Counted from the stretch's first letter, positions 3,466 through 47,266 are shown. The stretch: 64,000 nucleotides of DNA from IMGVR_UViG_3300042473_001540:1-64000, one strand, 5' to 3'. Made by a program: numbers and translations. Notes: generated from the sequence alone by a model not told the origin.

Positions 3466-3729
3466 ATGCTGATGTTTATGTTGGATCCACTGGGGAAGTT
3501 TGGTTCCAAGAAGGCACCCAAACATTACGCTTTGGTGACGATGAAACCCCTGGTGGCATACCACATCACAACTGACAACAGCACCAACAACTGGATTTTT
3601 GCTGTGGTCTACTGGGGAGAAGGGTGGCACAACAATCATCATGCCAATCCTAAAAAATGGAATTTTGGTGAACGCTGGTGGGAAATTGATGTGTCGGGGT
3701 GTATTATACGCCTTGTACAAAAAAGTTGA
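3466..3729 (+). pseudogene. C-terminal fragment of delta-9 fatty acid desaturase
   Basis: Only the third His box (GEGWHNNHH) and WWEID present; first two His boxes absent. Confidence 0.6.
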
Positions 3730-3780
3730 CATAATCCCCATGTCTTGCTATATAAGAGAATAGCCAAAAGGATAGACCTT
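3726..3780 (+). promoter_or_regulatory. Sigma70 promoter plus leader hairpin motif
   Basis: TTGACA-17-TATATA, then AAAAGGATAGACCTT at 3766-3780. Confidence 0.7.
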
Positions 3781-3808
3781 GCGGCAGATTGAGCAAAGGA
3801 TTTTTGCG

Positions 3809-4879
3809 ATGAACAAAGCTGACCTAGGAATCTTTATCGGAAGGTTTTCTCCTTACCATTCAGGTCACCACCATGTGGTAACTGAAGCACTCAAGCACGC
3901 AGACAATTTGGTGATTTTGGTGGGCAGTGCCCGCAGTCCGCGCAGTTATCGTGTGCCGTTTACCTTTCAAGAACGGCGGGACATGATTGAAGGCAGCCTG
4001 CCTGCCGAGCTGAAAAACAGAGTGCGAGTTCTGCCTCTAGAGGACGCCACCTACAACGACAGCAAGTGGATCCACAATGTGCAGACGCTGGCTGCCCAAG
4101 GGGCGACGCTTTTTGGGCTTGACCCAGCCAAAGCCAAGATCACACTAGTGGGCCACAGCCGAGACAACACCAGCTATTACCTGAAACTGTTTCCTCAATG
4201 GAGCAATGTGGAGGTCAGCAGCTTCCGCGACATCAGCGGTACCAACATTCGCAACAGCTACTTCAGCAACATGGGCCACATGTGGGTGAGAGATGCAGAT
4301 GGCCACCAAGCAGGTGACCTGCCTCAGGATGCAGTGGTGACACCCTATGTGCAGAAGTTTCTCAGCAGTTTCCTTGATACTCCCAACCACAAGCTGATCC
4401 GTGACGAGTATGAGTTTGTGCTGAAGTACAAAAGCAGTTGGGCGGCTGCGCCTTACCCTGTGAATCTAGTGTGCGTAGACGCTGTGGTGATCAAAAGCGG
4501 ACATGTGCTAATGGTGGAACGTGGAGCAATGCCAGGGAAAGGCCAGCTTGCACTTCCTGGTGGATACCTAGATGTAACTGAGCGAGTAGTTGACGGGATG
4601 ATCCGTGAGCTGCGTGAGGAAACTCGGTTGAAAGTCCCAGCTCCGGTGCTTAAAGGCAGCATTGTCAAGAAGGAAGTTTTTGACGATCCTAATCGCAGCA
4701 GCCGAGGTCGAGTGCTCACAGTAGCTTATCTCATTGATCTTGGCACAGGTCCACTTGACACAGTCAAGGGCGGAGATGATGCGGCCTCAGCCAAATGGGT
4801 AGCCCTTAAAGATCTTCGGCCAGAAATCTGTTTTGAGGACCACTATCATTTAATCTCTGTACTAGTCGGGGCAATTTAG
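3809..4879 (+). CDS. nadM: Bifunctional NMN adenylyltransferase / ADP-ribose Nudix hydrolase
   Basis: FIGRFSPYHSGH (HxGH), SGTNIR, Nudix box GG...RELREET. Confidence 0.9.
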   Translation: MNKADLGIFIGRFSPYHSGHHHVVTEALKHADNLVILVGSARSPRSYRVPFTFQERRDMIEGSLPAELKNRVRVLPLEDATYNDSKWIHNVQTLAAQGATLFGLDPAKAKITLVGHSRDNTSYYLKLFPQWSNVEVSSFRDISGTNIRNSYFSNMGHMWVRDADGHQAGDLPQDAVVTPYVQKFLSSFLDTPNHKLIRDEYEFVLKYKSSWAAAPYPVNLVCVDAVVIKSGHVLMVERGAMPGKGQLALPGGYLDVTERVVDGMIRELREETRLKVPAPVLKGSIVKKEVFDDPNRSSRGRVLTVAYLIDLGTGPLDTVKGGDDAASAKWVALKDLRPEICFEDHYHLISVLVGAI

Positions 4880-4889
4880 GAAAAAGGTA

Positions 4890-5087
4890 ATGATGACGCG
4901 CATCAAGATTGAAACTTGCACCACCATCAGTAATGTGGACCCCAGCAGTCTCGAGCAGTTGAAACAAACTCTCCGTATCTCACAGAAGCAGGGGTTGATT
5001 AGGCCCACAGGTGATCCCAGTATTGATGCGCCCATCACGGAACAAGAAAATGACAAAGAAAACAAAAAAGAAGATCCCAACAATTGA
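4890..5087 (+). CDS. Hypothetical protein
   Basis: ORF with RBS in operon. Confidence 0.45.
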   Translation: MMTRIKIETCTTISNVDPSSLEQLKQTLRISQKQGLIRPTGDPSIDAPITEQENDKENKKEDPNN

Positions 5088-5199
5088 AGCCGCTCTAGCG
5101 GAATGTTTGGTGCAACAGGCTGGCGAGCTGTGGCAACCTGCTGAGCCAAGCCTGTTGGAACAACTGCTCCGTTACCGCGAAAGGACAGACAGTGAGTGA
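5050..5199 (+). CDS. Hypothetical protein
   Basis: Short ORF MTKKTKKK... overlapping neighbours. Confidence 0.4.
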   Translation: MTKKTKKKIPTIEAALAECLVQQAGELWQPAEPSLLEQLLRYRERTDSE

Positions 5200-5512
5200 C
5201 ACTCCCCAGTTCACAGAAGTTGATCTCAGCAAAACCACACGGCATGGCAGTGATGAGCTAACAGTGGGACCAACCTATATCTGCTTGATTCACGGCAGCT
5301 ATTTCATAGGCACATTCGGCAAGGTATGGTTTGGCTTGAACTTCAATGGTTGGCATGGCTGCGGCTTGCAATACGATCCACCGGGCACTAACTCTAGCCG
5401 TTGGCAGCGGGTGTGGCGGTTTGACAATGCAGAACTCATCAAACAAACTGAATCAGTTGTTGATGCATTGTTGAAAGGCACACCTAATGGGACACTACGA
5501 CGAACAACGTGA
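5192..5512 (+). CDS. Hypothetical protein
   Basis: ORF with AGGA RBS, coupled to neighbours. Confidence 0.6.
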   Translation: MSDTPQFTEVDLSKTTRHGSDELTVGPTYICLIHGSYFIGTFGKVWFGLNFNGWHGCGLQYDPPGTNSSRWQRVWRFDNAELIKQTESVVDALLKGTPNGTLRRTT

Positions 5513-5714
5513 TTTTGACGACTATCAGCAAAGTCTACGGCGAGATAAACAGTTGATTGAAGATGTGAAAAGTGGCAAATTTGGGGTGCTCTTGCATGCT
5601 GCTGACATTGCCAACAGCAATACAGTGATGGTGAACTGTGGCACATTTGCACGCATGATCAGCATCATCTCACGACTTGACCCGAAAACCTACACATACC
5701 CCTGGGAACGATAA
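5487..5714 (+). CDS. Hypothetical protein
   Basis: ORF in operon. Confidence 0.55.
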   Translation: MGHYDEQRDFDDYQQSLRRDKQLIEDVKSGKFGVLLHAADIANSNTVMVNCGTFARMISIISRLDPKTYTYPWER

Positions 5715-5724
5715 GGAAATTTCA

Positions 5725-6282
5725 ATGGTTATGACTGCACGAGCCTACCGGCATTTACGCGATCTCATCTCGGAAAAAAGTTTGATTCAAGATCAAAACT
5801 TCACTCTCAGCAGTGGAGCAGCCAGCAACTACTTCTTCAACATGAAGATCTCCATGTTGGATCCCATGGGCAGCAATCTCATTGCTGATGCTATGCTGGA
5901 TATTCTCGATACATTGGATTTTGACAGCGTAGGAGGGATGGCTGTGGGCAGCGTTCCGTTGGTTACCAGCATTGCCACCAAAAGCTACCTACGCAGTCGC
6001 CATTATCCAGCTTTCTTTGTGCGAAAAGAAGTGAAAGATCACGGCGTGCAAACAAAGATTGATGGCCACTGCACTCCGGGTAGCCGAGTGGTGCTGGTGG
6101 AAGATGTGACTACTACTGGAGGCAGCATCATGCGGGCTGTTGAGGCTGTGCGGGAGATTGGTTGCCAAGTGGACACAGTGCTCACAGTCGTTGACCGACT
6201 GGAAGGTGCGCGAGAGAATCTATCAGCAGAAAAGATTCGCTTGATCCCCCTCTACACACGAGTTGATTTTGAGGATTCATAA
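5725..6282 (+). CDS. pyrE: Orotate phosphoribosyltransferase
   Basis: FTLSSG, RKEVKDHG, PRPP motif VLVEDVTTTGGS. Confidence 0.9.
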   Translation: MVMTARAYRHLRDLISEKSLIQDQNFTLSSGAASNYFFNMKISMLDPMGSNLIADAMLDILDTLDFDSVGGMAVGSVPLVTSIATKSYLRSRHYPAFFVRKEVKDHGVQTKIDGHCTPGSRVVLVEDVTTTGGSIMRAVEAVREIGCQVDTVLTVVDRLEGARENLSAEKIRLIPLYTRVDFEDS

Positions 6283-6285
6283 ATT

Positions 6286-7017
6286 ATGATTATAATTCCT
6301 GACTCTCCCATTGCAGTTACACATCTAAAAAGGCCTATTATTCTCCCAGGAACTCCTTTACCAGATTATGTGGTGGAGAAAATACTCGCAAGTGAACAAG
6401 TTATTGACGATGATGACTCCTCCTTTGAAACAATGTTTTCTGGGGCAAAACCAATTGATTCGTCCGGCTTTACTGGGGCAGTGACTCAGTGGGTTGAAGG
6501 AGAACTTGGAAGTTTAGGGTATCCTATAAATCACAGCAGAGGGATTGACGTACCGCCCTACAGTATCGAGATCAGAACTCGCAGAAAACACGCTACAGCT
6601 CCACAAACTTTTGGGTCTCTCAAACTATCAGATATAATTCAAAACTCATGGCTTACATCTGATATCAAAACAAAGTGTCAACTCCACTATCAAGTGATGT
6701 GGGATGCGCAACACATGGTTGTTTGTGACGATCAAATCGTGGATTTCCGACATCCTTGGAGACAAGAGGCGTTACAAAAAGCTTTTGATAATGCTAGGGA
6801 TGAGCTGATTGCATACTATTCTAGGCCCAATATTACAGTGCCTTTGAAATTCACTTCGACTGCTGGCGGAATTTATCTTGAAAGAACTTCAAGGAAGAAC
6901 AGCAAAAAAAGCTGGTTCTCAGCATTTTACCAGTTTCGAGTACGAAACAATTTGATGGAAAAATGGCATATAGCGGGCAGGAAAAACTCATACGATGAGC
7001 TGTTTTCAAAAATTTAA
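6286..7017 (+). CDS. Hypothetical protein, possible PD-(D/E)xK-like nuclease
   Basis: 243-aa ORF with AT-richer codon use; GID...IEIRTR weakly nuclease-like. Confidence 0.45.
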   Translation: MIIIPDSPIAVTHLKRPIILPGTPLPDYVVEKILASEQVIDDDDSSFETMFSGAKPIDSSGFTGAVTQWVEGELGSLGYPINHSRGIDVPPYSIEIRTRRKHATAPQTFGSLKLSDIIQNSWLTSDIKTKCQLHYQVMWDAQHMVVCDDQIVDFRHPWRQEALQKAFDNARDELIAYYSRPNITVPLKFTSTAGGIYLERTSRKNSKKSWFSAFYQFRVRNNLMEKWHIAGRKNSYDELFSKI

Positions 7018-7020
7018 AAG

Positions 7021-7080
7021 TTGACGTAATTGGGCATCTAGCCTATAAATATGACACAGGAAAAGGATAGACCTTTTCCT
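7021..7080 (+). promoter_or_regulatory. Sigma70/late promoter plus leader hairpin motif
   Basis: TTGACG-17-TATAAATA, then AGGAAAAGG-ATAGA-CCTTTTCCT. Confidence 0.7.
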
Positions 7081-7107
7081 TCACATACTGAACAAGGGAG
7101 ACTTGTT

Positions 7108-8517
7108 ATGTTCAATTACGATAGCGTCATTCTTGACGTCGACAGCTACAAATTCAGCCATCCGTGGCAACTTCCCCCAAACACCACACACATTCACAGC
7201 TACGTAGAAAGTCGCGGCGGACGCTTCCCTCGCACACTGTTTTACGGGCTCCAAATGTGGCTCAAGCGTCGGCTGGTGACTCCAGTGACCATGAGCGACG
7301 TGGACGAGGCTGCTGGATTGGCAGCCGCACACATGGTGCCTTTCCATCGGGAAGGCTGGGAATACATTGTGCGTGAGCACCAGGGCCGGTTGCCAGTAGA
7401 GATTCGAGCAGTGCCCGAAGGCATGGTGATCCCCACTCACAACGTGCTAGCCACTGTGGTGAACACCGATCCCAATGTGCCCTGGCTCACTAGCTTCCTA
7501 GAGACAGCTCTACTCCGTGCTGTTTGGTACCCCACCACAGTGGCCACACTCAGCTGGCATGCCAAGCAGACCATTCGAGCTGCACTGGGGAAGAGCAGCG
7601 ACAACCCCGAAGGCGAGCTTCTGTTTCGACTGCACGACTTTGGCGCTCGTGGCGTCAGCAGCGATGAAAGCGCTCAGCTGGGTGGCAGTGCTCACCTAGT
7701 GAACTTCCGAGGCACCGACACTGTTGCAGCCCTCCTTGCAGCCCGACGCTACTACACCGAGGCCATGGCAGGGTTTAGCATTCCGGCAGCAGAGCACAGC
7801 ACCATCACCAGTTGGGGTCGCGATGGCGAAGCTGAGGCCTATGGCAACATGCTCAAGCAGTTTGCCCGGCCAGGCAGCATCCTTGCAGTGGTGAGCGACA
7901 GCTACGACATCATGAACGCGGTCAACCACATCTGGGGCGAAACACTGCGAGACCGTGTGCTAGACAGTGGGGCCACCCTTGTGATTCGTCCCGACAGCGG
8001 TGATCCAGTTGTGGTGCCAGTTGATGTGGTTGAGGCACTTGGTGAGCGGTTTGGCTACACCGTCAACAGCAAGGGCTACAAGGTGCTGAACAAGAGTGTG
8101 CGTGTGATCCAGGGCGATGGCATGAACATTGACAGCATCAAAACCCTGTATGACAACCTCACAGCACGCGGCTGGAGTGCAGAAAACGTGGCTGTGGGCA
8201 TGGGCGGCCAACTCTTGCAAGGTATTACTCGCGACACCAATCGATTTGCGATGAAAGCTTCAGCTGCCTGTATTGATGGGGAATGGCGCGAGGTATATAA
8301 GGATCCTATTACAGACAAAGGAAAAACATCCAAGAAAGGTAAAGTTACCCTTTGGCAGTCAGGTAACCAATTTCAAACAAGCGTTAACACTCCTCTACGC
8401 GGTCTTGAGAATGGTGTGGTGTGGACCGACGTTCTGCAGACAGTCTACCGGAATGGACGCCTTCTCATTGATCAATCATTCCAGGACATTAGAGATCGAT
8501 CTGAGAAAGTCTTTTAA
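7108..8517 (+). CDS. nadV: Nicotinamide phosphoribosyltransferase (NAMPT)
   Basis: DSYKFSH, LHDFGARG, SIPAAEHS, VSDSYD, IRPDSGDP, IQGDG motifs. Confidence 0.95.
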   Translation: MFNYDSVILDVDSYKFSHPWQLPPNTTHIHSYVESRGGRFPRTLFYGLQMWLKRRLVTPVTMSDVDEAAGLAAAHMVPFHREGWEYIVREHQGRLPVEIRAVPEGMVIPTHNVLATVVNTDPNVPWLTSFLETALLRAVWYPTTVATLSWHAKQTIRAALGKSSDNPEGELLFRLHDFGARGVSSDESAQLGGSAHLVNFRGTDTVAALLAARRYYTEAMAGFSIPAAEHSTITSWGRDGEAEAYGNMLKQFARPGSILAVVSDSYDIMNAVNHIWGETLRDRVLDSGATLVIRPDSGDPVVVPVDVVEALGERFGYTVNSKGYKVLNKSVRVIQGDGMNIDSIKTLYDNLTARGWSAENVAVGMGGQLLQGITRDTNRFAMKASAACIDGEWREVYKDPITDKGKTSKKGKVTLWQSGNQFQTSVNTPLRGLENGVVWTDVLQTVYRNGRLLIDQSFQDIRDRSEKVF

Positions 8518-21224: not shown

Positions 21225-21255
21225 TTGACATTTTTTGAACCTTCTCCTATAAATA
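21225..21255 (+). promoter_or_regulatory. Overlapping sigma70 and late promoter
   Basis: TTGACA-17-TATAAATA. Confidence 0.75.
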
Positions 21256-21675: not shown

Positions 21676-21700
21676 GTTTTAAGACAAAAGGATAGAATTT

Positions 21701-25024: not shown

Positions 25025-25133
25025 TTGCCATCGAGGTTGGAACAGCCTCCCAACACACCATGAGAATGGTAACTAGCCGGCAGCAATCACCTAGCTGGTG
25101 AAGAAATCCGGAAGTGGCATCCGGCGATGGCGA
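25025..25133 (+). ncRNA. Candidate multibranch RNA
   Basis: TTGCCATCG/CGATGGCGA closing stem with four internal hairpins. Confidence 0.45.
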
Positions 25134-40124: not shown

Positions 40125-40248
40125 GGATCCGTGGTCTAATTGGATAAGGCAAGAGCCTTCCGGTCCCGCAGGTAGCATTCAAGGTTCGAATCCTTGGGGA
40201 CCGCTCCTAAGCTCTTCGATGGGGGTTCGAATCCCTCCGGGTCCGCCA
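40125..40248 (+). tRNA. tRNA-Arg (probably TCT) with 47-nt tRNA-mimic insertion in anticodon
   Basis: GGATCCG/CGGGTCC-GCCA; AGAGC/GCTCT stem; two TTCGAAT T arms. Confidence 0.8.
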
Positions 40249-47192: not shown

Positions 47193-47266
47193 GGCCCCAT
47201 AAGACAAAGGTAGTCAGCTGGACTCTAAATCCAGTGGTGTGAGTTCAAATCTCACTGGTGCCACCA
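47193..47266 (+). tRNA. Amber suppressor tRNA (CTA)
   Basis: CTGGA-CTCTAAA-TCCAG; TTCAAAT; ACCA; own TTGACG-17-TATACA promoter. Confidence 0.85.

Follow-up and report, generated by a model that had tools for sequence, protein, structure and literature searches.

A conserved RNA leader precedes the NAD-salvage genes nadM and nadV in phages and bacteria

The NAD-recycling genes nadM and nadV of many phages and bacteria are directly preceded by a small two-hairpin RNA structure that matches no family in Rfam 15 and most likely controls how much of these enzymes is made. The element was found in a 64,000-nt window (IMGVR_UViG_3300042473_001540:1-64000) of a 180,697-bp virus record, in which the 15-mer AAAAGGATAGACCTT occurs in the leaders of both genes and forms the tip of the first hairpin. 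The original prediction, that an identical 15-nt hairpin motif lies at the same position in both leaders, is confirmed. Its interpretation as a phage NAD-regulon element, either a protein operator or a small ligand-sensing RNA, is only partly supported. The element is regulatory in all likelihood, specific to the NAD-salvage genes and of the RNA kind, but it is not a phage invention, its conserved unit is not the 15-mer, and the second conserved block, TGA(G/A)CAA(A/G)GGA, belongs to a separate hairpin that holds the ribosome-binding site.

Organization of the two leaders

Both copies of the 15-mer are on the + strand, at 3766-3780 and 7061-7075, and each lies 11 nt after the -10 box of a sigma70-like promoter. 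In the nadM leader, the promoter (3726-3754) consists of TTGACA (3726-3731), a 17-nt spacer and TATATA (3749-3754), with a predicted start at about 3760-3762, and the ATG at 3809 follows the 15-mer by 28 nt. In the nadV leader, the promoter (7021-7049) consists of TTGACG (7021-7026), a 17-nt spacer and TATAAA (7044-7049), with a predicted start at about 7055-7057, and the ATG at 7108 follows the 15-mer by 32 nt. Only three TTGAC-N17-19-TATAWA sites exist in the window. Both start sites are inferred from sequence alone, and although 20 lake-water DNA runs hold the phage, no RNA run was found to hold it.

The first gene (3809-4879, +) encodes a bifunctional NMN adenylyltransferase/Nudix hydrolase (nadM-Nudix) of 356 aa, identified by the Pfam domains CTP_transf_like and NUDIX and by NCBIfam NF003786 (406 bits, cut-off 397). 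The second gene (7108-8517, +) is nadV, encoding a nicotinamide phosphoribosyltransferase of 469 aa (Pfam NAMPT_N plus NAPRTase, 211 bits). The cassette also contains a pyrE-like type I phosphoribosyltransferase gene (5725-6282, +; TIGR00336, 154.8 bits, cut-off 106.8), which has no leader of this type.

Each leader folds into two hairpins, termed P1 and P2. In the nadM leader, P1 (3763-3785) is formed by GCC/GGC, a 2x2 internal loop and AAGG/CCUU, closing the loop AUAGA (3772-3776), and P2 (3793-3807) is GCAAA-GGAUU-UUUGC, with the Shine-Dalgarno GGA at 3798-3800 and a stem that ends 1 nt before the ATG. In the nadV leader, P1 (7058-7080) has a 9-bp stem, AGGAAAAGG/CCUUUUCCU, and the loop AUAGA (7067-7071; z = -3.4), and P2 (7091-7107) is AACAAG-GGAGA-CUUGUU, with the Shine-Dalgarno GGAG at 7097-7100 and a stem that abuts the ATG. 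The repeated TGA(G/A)CAA(A/G)GGA is the 5' arm and loop of P2. P1 and P2 are the minimum-energy fold in all five leaders that were folded.

With up to one mismatch, the two copies of the 15-mer are the only ones in the virus record; the 11-mer core gives the same result, and the 9-mer GGATAGACC has only these two copies in a near-identical 309,756-bp contig. A repeated exact 15-mer is nevertheless not improbable by itself, since about two such pairs are expected by chance in 64 kb, and the 84 viral contigs that hold the exact 15-mer are judged, by a rough estimate that assumes the size of the collection, to be about what chance would give. The only loci with two copies are near-identical phages, apart from one in which both copies lie in coding sequence of unrelated genes. 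A copy with two mismatches at 21686 lies just before tRNA-Cys, has no stem and is not hit by the covariance model described below. The significance of the motif comes from its position, the hairpin and the comparative data.

Conservation and distribution of the element

The conserved unit is a 7-nt apex, the loop AUAGA closed by a G-C pair, on a P1 stem of 7-9 bp whose sequence is free but stays paired. An alignment anchored only on GATAGAC shows 80.9% paired cells against 47.9% in shuffles and a covariation score of 0.795 against 0.19, whereas slid controls reach at most 0.25. When P2 is included, helix 1 is 82% paired and helix 2 is 93% paired, with a score of 0.858 against 0.204. Eight of 9 P1 pairs and 5 of 5 P2 pairs change on both sides, and none of 500 shuffles reaches the observed score. 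P1 is followed by an A-rich, G-poor linker, and P2, about 12 nt downstream, presents the Shine-Dalgarno sequence in its loop and ends at, or overlaps, the AUG. The distance from the apex to GGA is 29.8 +/- 3.0 nt in 98 unique leaders, and the whole leader is roughly 52 nt.

A covariance model of the leader (R1) finds only the nadM and nadV leaders in phage genomes of 150-450 kb. It gives two hits in the 180-kb record (50.5 bits for nadV and 46.1 bits for nadM; the next hit is 10 bits), two in the 310-kb contig, two in a complete 354-kb phage (next hit 18 bits) and two in the isolate DSS3_MAL1, a roseophage. The motif does not precede unrelated genes in these genomes; its occurrence before many unrelated genes had been named beforehand as an outcome that would refute the original prediction. 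In some other phages, the leader also precedes a few small ORFs, for which Pfam is silent and only PHROGs of unknown function were found, so that they offer no regulator candidate. All 85 hits in 100 phage loci are on the gene strand and end at start codons of NadV, NadM or small ORFs, and the same is true of all bacterial hits.

The same leader precedes nadM and nadV in many Proteobacteria (alpha, beta and gamma), where it often starts a few nucleotides after the upstream stop codon, and it was also found in a cyanobacterial MAG. In a sample of 151 Gammaproteobacteria, searched with strict filters, there were two hits, which says only that the motif is not ubiquitous. In bacteria and in DSS3_MAL1, P1 begins 4-30 nt after the upstream stop codon, which leaves no room for a promoter, and the element therefore acts on RNA and is not specific to phages.

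The apex differs between lineages. Besides G[AUAGA]C, it occurs as C[AGAGA]G or C[AGUGA]G, as G[GUUGA]C, and as AGGGA or ACGGA in phage RSP15. It changes in concert in both leaders of a genome: 17 loci are all G-C, 11 are all C-G and none is mixed. However, the C-G class is mostly one NadM clade (11 of 13), so the concerted change may be a single event.

No Rfam family matched the leaders, either in permissive searches of the leaders and related loci or in a scan of the whole window at gathering cut-offs; a 12-bit look-alike (cow-rumen-4) is far below its gathering score of 48.5 bits. Neither P1 is listed by a terminator scan, and no consistent U tract follows P1, as an intrinsic terminator would require. 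In the literature that could be searched, no RNA motif of nadV or nadM and no third NAD riboswitch class was found.

Possible mechanisms

The two-hairpin structure, its conserved apex, its attachment cistron by cistron to nadM and nadV and its occurrence in Proteobacteria and in phages carrying this cassette are established by the analysis, whereas the mechanism, including any binding of a protein or ligand and any effect on translation, is inferred. The reading tentatively favored here, at somewhat less than even odds, is a translational operator whose P1 apex is read by a dedicated protein. Bound at a fixed distance of about 30 nt from the Shine-Dalgarno sequence, such a partner would stabilize or occlude P2 and so set ribosome access, tying the synthesis of NadM and NadV to NAD status. 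The partner would most likely be a protein that travels with the cassette (NadM-Nudix or NadV acting on their own mRNAs) or a conserved host protein. In this phage, each leader sits right behind a host-type sigma70 promoter, so P1 would also form the 5' end of the transcript. A protein is preferred over a ligand because only 7 nt plus the Shine-Dalgarno sequence are conserved, and a sequence-specific loop on a free stem is the usual form of a protein-binding site (MS2, boxB, IRE). The concerted change of the apex points in the same direction, and the restriction of the regulon to the cassette rules out global RNA binders. Conversely, no partner protein was identified, and the cassette proteins show only enzyme domains. 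The main apex is identical across alpha- and gamma-proteobacteria and phages of unrelated hosts, and the element moves with the genes, both of which are typical of riboswitches. P2 also occurs without P1 in many nadV leaders and may work independently.

A small riboswitch is possible, although less likely. In this view, the P1 apex, perhaps docking on the P2 loop or the A-rich linker as the two hairpins of guanidine-II do, binds an NAD-related metabolite (NAD+, NMN, nicotinamide, ADP-ribose or PRPP) and changes access to the Shine-Dalgarno sequence held in P2. This reading is favored by the strict association with one pathway across diverse bacteria and phages of different hosts, by the portability of an element that needs no extra gene, by the lack of NrtR in the phages searched, by the tight P1-to-P2 spacing, by P2 being a typical translational expression platform, and by a size that matches the smallest known riboswitches. 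Against it, there are too few conserved nucleotides for a selective pocket, and the apex varies between lineages and its closing pair flips, whereas ligand pockets are normally invariant. The P1 and P2 loops differ (AUAGA against GGAGU), unlike those of guanidine-II, and are not complementary, no conserved complement to AUAGA was found by eye in the leaders, including the linker, and no Rfam riboswitch model matches.

A constitutive structural module with no regulator is unlikely. P1 would then be a 5' or intercistronic stabilizer and insulator and P2 would present the Shine-Dalgarno sequence, together giving robust, context-independent translation of a horizontally mobile cassette. P1 does lie at the predicted 5' end of the phage transcript, P2-like hairpins with the Shine-Dalgarno sequence in the loop occur before a few other genes in the window, and the cassette has a higher G+C than the phage (0.52-0.55 against 0.45), which fits a mobile unit that brings its own leader. 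However, a stabilizer does not need an invariant loop sequence and closing pair kept over proteins that are only 45-60% identical, and this reading does not explain the fixed distance to the Shine-Dalgarno sequence or the restriction to this one cassette in 350-450 kb genomes. A double-stranded DNA operator for NrtR or another NAD regulator, overlapping the transcription start, is very unlikely, as the arms vary freely even within one genome around an invariant, non-palindromic center, every hit is on the sense strand, and in bacteria the element lies inside operons just after stop codons.

The route formed by nadV and nadM-Nudix is nicotinamide salvage, which phages use to rebuild NAD+ when host defense systems destroy it, and only DNA-binding regulators (NrtR, NadR and NiaR) have been described for these genes in bacteria. 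The element found here is a compact and highly specific RNA leader shared by bacteria and phages. It would add a post-transcriptional layer to NAD homeostasis, it offers a clear marker for the cassette in metagenomes, and the choice between ligand and protein is directly testable with 55-nt RNAs and a cultivable system (DSS3_MAL1). A more far-reaching possibility, which remains doubtful, is that the leader is a new, very small riboswitch class or a self-contained RNA-enzyme feedback loop that senses NAD status (NAD+, NMN, nicotinamide or ADP-ribose). Bacteria would use it for NAD homeostasis, and jumbo and other phages would have captured it together with nadM and nadV, so that their NAD-reconstitution pathway is translated when infection or NAD-degrading defense systems deplete NAD. 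If it senses a metabolite, it would be a third NAD-related riboswitch class and the first tied to phage counter-defense.

Comparison with known systems

The NAD+-I (nadA) and NAD+-II (pnuC) riboswitches are also cis-acting leaders of NAD-metabolism genes that act on the ribosome-binding site, but they differ in architecture, genes and taxa (Acidobacteria nadA and Streptococcus pnuC; PMC6859854, PMC7749635). Their Rfam models gave no hit at E up to 10 in searches of 86-3,700 nt; in those of 86-91 nt, no Rfam model of any kind matched at that cut-off.

NrtR, the Nudix-related transcriptional regulator of NAD genes, controls the same genes (nadM, nadV and prs) through a 21-23 bp dyad, similar in overall size to P1, and in both phage promoters the motif has a fixed position 11 nt after the -10 box. 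Published NrtR sites are DNA palindromes with conserved arms and a free center (core GT-N7-AC or TG-N7-CA; in Mycobacterium, GTTTTCGA-N7-TCGAAAAC; PMC2330246, PMC6800001), whereas P1 has free arms, which differ between the two or three sites of one genome, and a fixed asymmetric center, GATAGAC. nrtR lies next to nadM in 3 of 5 motif-bearing bacteria tested, but no NrtR winged-helix domain (PF21906) was found in the five phage genomes or contigs searched, two of them complete by CheckV, or in the isolate DSS3_MAL1, a search that does not extend to an NrtR of the host.

Two-site translational repression by CsrA/RsmA similarly involves an upstream hairpin loop plus a second site over the Shine-Dalgarno sequence, 10-60 nt apart, and the P2 loop (A)AGGAG and the RSP15 P1 loops AGGGA and ACGGA look like A(N)GGA sites. 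However, the main P1 loop, AUAGA, lacks GGA, which occurs only in P2 and in a few lineages. The regulon is one cassette and not global, and the motif occurs in alpha- and beta-proteobacteria, which generally are not known to have CsrA.

Hairpin-loop protein operators (lambda boxB-N, T4 gp43 and RegA, MS2 coat protein and the PyrR binding loop) share a sequence-specific terminal loop on a stem of free sequence, placed next to a ribosome-binding site or regulatory signal, but no binding protein is known for P1. The AGAGA variant closed by C-G, with AGUCC..GG flanks, resembles the PyrR loop consensus, and PyrR is itself a phosphoribosyltransferase-fold protein. A PyrR site was rejected because the Rfam PyrR model (RF00515) gave no hit in 15 loci that include the AGAGA-loop class, nor in a 76-nt search, and because the phosphoribosyltransferase in the window is PyrE-like, not PyrR, and is absent from most loci that carry the motif.

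The guanidine-II riboswitch (mini-ykkC) likewise has two small tandem hairpins joined by a short linker, conservation confined to the loops and closing pairs, involvement of the ribosome-binding site and a total size of about 50 nt. Its two loops are identical ACGR tetraloops that kiss around guanidine, whereas those of the leader are pentaloops of different sequence (AUAGA and GGAGU or GGAUU), and the genes that follow belong to NAD salvage.

The repeated motif and its genes

The motif AAAAGGATAGACCTT is found at 3766-3780 and 7061-7075 on the + strand, and with up to one mismatch these are the only copies in the 180,697-bp virus record that holds the window. The 11-mer core gives the same two sites, and the 9-mer GGATAGACC has only these two copies in a near-identical 309,756-bp contig. 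The geometry described in the original prediction is correct: the nadM leader contains TTGACA at 3726, a spacer of 17 nt, TATATA at 3749-3754, a further 11 nt, the 15-mer, and the ATG at 3809, whereas the nadV leader contains TTGACG at 7021, 17 nt, TATAAA at 7044-7049, 11 nt, the 15-mer, and the ATG at 7108. An exact repeated 15-mer is not unlikely in 64 kb (about two pairs by our arithmetic), and the 84 viral contigs that hold the 15-mer are judged to be about chance level. The case therefore rests on context and comparison.

The gene at 3809-4879 encodes a bifunctional NMN adenylyltransferase/Nudix protein (NadM-Nudix), and the gene at 7108-8517 encodes nicotinamide phosphoribosyltransferase (NadV). 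Between them lie three small ORFs, a PyrE-like orotate phosphoribosyltransferase (5725-6282, + strand) and an AT-richer ORF without relatives (6286-7017, + strand). The PyrE-like protein, for which the related phage has a 184-aa ORF at the corresponding place, has no evident role in an NAD cassette and may use a different substrate. The ORF at 6286-7017 lies between the pyrE-like gene and the nadV promoter, encodes 243 aa, has a G+C of 0.41 (against 0.45 for the window and 0.55 for nadV) and has no Pfam, NCBIfam or PHROG match; the related phage has different genes at this place, so it may be an insertion. Just upstream of the nadM promoter, an 87-aa ORF (3466-3729, + strand) matches only the C-terminal part of the fatty-acid desaturase profile (positions 194-225 of 253) and looks like a gene fragment.

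Conservation and structure of the leader

A related phage contig (NadV 83% identical) keeps only AGGATAGACCT in both leaders, with different flanks that are still complementary. A search with a promoter-plus-core pattern found more phages. In a complete 354-kb phage, the nadV leader has the same core, whereas the operon that contains nadM has a 9-bp stem of unrelated sequence around the same loop ATAGA; another relative has GGG-ATAGA-CCC. To examine conservation without reference to the motif, 160 viral loci were collected through alignments of NadV and NadM. GATAGAC lies 35-60 nt before the gene in 33 of 72 unique nadV leaders and in 37 of 71 unique nadM leaders. A hairpin census that ignores loop sequence shows G[ATAGA]C as by far the commonest apex, with C[AGAGA]G, C[AGTGA]G and G[AAAGA]C as minor classes.

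In 60 sequences aligned only on GATAGAC, nine flanking pairs (hairpin P1) are 80.9% paired, compared with 47.9% in shuffles, and eight of the nine pairs change on both sides. The covariation score is 0.795 against 0.19, slid controls reach at most 0.25, and all 94 unique sequences give the same picture. A second hairpin, P2, follows after a linker of about 12 nt that is A-rich (40% A) and G-poor (11% G). The loop of P2 is GGAGU, GGAUU or GGAGA, which is the Shine-Dalgarno sequence, and its 3' arm ends 0-3 nt before the AUG or overlaps it. P2 is 93% paired, and all five pairs covary. The block TGA(G/A)CAA(A/G)GGA that the original prediction had placed after the 15-mer is the 5' arm and loop of P2. 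The distance from the P1 apex to the GGA is 29.8 +/- 3.0 nt in 98 unique leaders, and P1 plus P2 is the minimum-energy fold of both window leaders, both leaders of the isolate roseophage DSS3_MAL1 and a Cellvibrio leader.

Specificity in phage genomes

A covariance model of the leader (R1; 52 positions, 14 pairs) gave two hits in the 180-kb record (50.5 and 46.1 bits; the next hit is 10 bits), two in the 310-kb contig, two in the complete 354-kb phage (45.8 and 45.6 bits; the next hit is 18 bits), one in a complete 453-kb phage and two in DSS3_MAL1. The window's own leaders were in the set used to train the model, although the hits in the 354-kb phage and DSS3_MAL1 and most bacterial nadM leaders were not, and E-values from the shortened calibration are rough. 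In 100 phage loci, all 85 hits are on the gene strand, and each of the 25 hits away from the expected position ends at the start of NadV, NadM or one of a few small ORF families of unknown function. These small ORFs (81-152 aa) belong to at least three or four families and lie in other phages, in the collected loci L177 (532-882), L211 (1028-1483), L178 (1184-1426), L227 (782-1078 and 1139-1486), L182 (2996-3346) and L184 (3071-3394). Pfam is silent on them and PHROGs lists them only as unknown function. They appear to be co-regulated with nadM and nadV. The model is silent in the KVP40-like, Klebsiella Slopekvirus and Caulobacter phage loci that also carry nadV. Occurrence before many unrelated genes, which had been named beforehand as the observation that would count against the motif, was therefore not found.

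The record is about 44% of a jumbo phage (CheckV estimate) that recurs in lake-water metagenomes. Only three strong sigma70-like promoters of this form exist in the 64 kb, and two of them drive the NAD leaders. The third (21225-21254, + strand; TTGACA-N17-TATAAA) lies upstream of a short ORF and the first tRNA cluster, and shares the extended -35 and -10 context with the two NAD promoters. The two NAD promoters suggest transcription by host RNA polymerase, with P1 at the very 5' end of the RNA, although the start sites are inferred from sequence alone. nadM and nadV have a higher G+C (0.52 and 0.55) than the window (0.45), which fits acquisition of the genes from bacteria together with their leaders. 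Elsewhere in the window, 18 tRNA genes occur in clusters (21701-47266, + strand), including one with anticodon CTA at 47193-47266 that is of an amber-suppressor type, is labelled tRNA-Pyl by ARAGORN and also scores 58.5 bits as a tRNA in Rfam; it may point to TAG recoding in part of this jumbo phage. The tRNA region also contains a match to the orphan 'skipping-rope' RNA family (RF02924) at 25026-25132 on the + strand (44.5 bits against a gathering score of 36.7). A 121-nt Rfam tRNA match at 40125-40245 on the + strand (43.8 bits) was not called by ARAGORN and could be a tRNA with an insert or intron.

Occurrence in bacteria

The leader is not phage-specific. Eighty bacterial nadV loci, from Thiothrix, Cellvibrio, Microbulbifer, Hahella, Marinobacter, Moraxellaceae, Acetobacteraceae, Budvicia and a Gloeomargaritaceae MAG, among others, gave 64 model hits. 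The hits lie before nadV and, about 1.1 kb upstream, before nadM, whereas one hit (28.6 bits), in Dasania phycosphaerae, lies before an SPFH/Band 7 gene downstream of nadV (locus L331, 3011-4107). In these operons, and in DSS3_MAL1, P1 starts 4-30 nt after the upstream stop codon, and the element therefore works inside polycistronic RNA. All five motif-bearing genomes tested have nadM next to nadV. In a Cellvibrio sp. MAG (loci L384 and L375; G013:C1:620119-627205), the locus reads nrtR (divergent), nadM, ADP-ribosylglycohydrolase, NADAR, LRR protein and nadV, with the RNA leader before nadM and nadV.

Possible mechanisms of control

The original prediction of a phage NAD-regulon element, either a protein operator or a small ligand-sensing RNA, is partly supported: the association with the NAD genes held, but the element is shared with bacteria. 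The analysis establishes that the element is an RNA attached cistron by cistron, that the ribosome-binding site sits in P2, that P1 has a loop under strong sequence constraint at a fixed distance from P2, and that the regulon is one cassette. Translational control, and the binding of any partner, are inferred from these features, which point to a dedicated partner that reads the P1 apex. A protein-read operator is tentatively favored. The information content is very small and has the hairpin-loop form typical of protein sites, and the apex differs by lineage and changes in concert in both leaders of a genome: among loci with two or more leaders, 17 are all G-C closed, 11 are all C-G closed, and none is mixed. 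The C-G class is, however, mainly one NadM clade, so this may be a single event. In addition, Comamonadaceae use GUUGA, and phage RSP15 uses AGGGA and ACGGA. Global binders such as CsrA are excluded by the narrow regulon and by the lack of GGA in the main loop. A riboswitch is possible but somewhat less likely; in its support, the distribution is cross-class and cross-host, the element is portable, and it is as small as the smallest riboswitches. A regulator-free stabilizer or translation module is unlikely, and a DNA operator is very unlikely.

Comparison with known elements

Scans against Rfam 15, including searches of 76-91 nt at E up to 10, give no family for the leaders, which covers the NAD+-I, NAD+-II, PyrR-site and guanidine-II models. 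Literature searches found no description of the element, although these did not extend to subscription journals or motif supplements, so it can only provisionally be called undescribed. NrtR sites are palindromes with conserved arms and a free center (PMC2330246; PMC6800001). P1 is the reverse, and no NrtR winged-helix domain was found in the five phage genomes or contigs searched. In three of five bacteria, namely Cellvibrio, Hahella and Budvicia, nrtR lies next to nadM, so the two layers of control can coexist.
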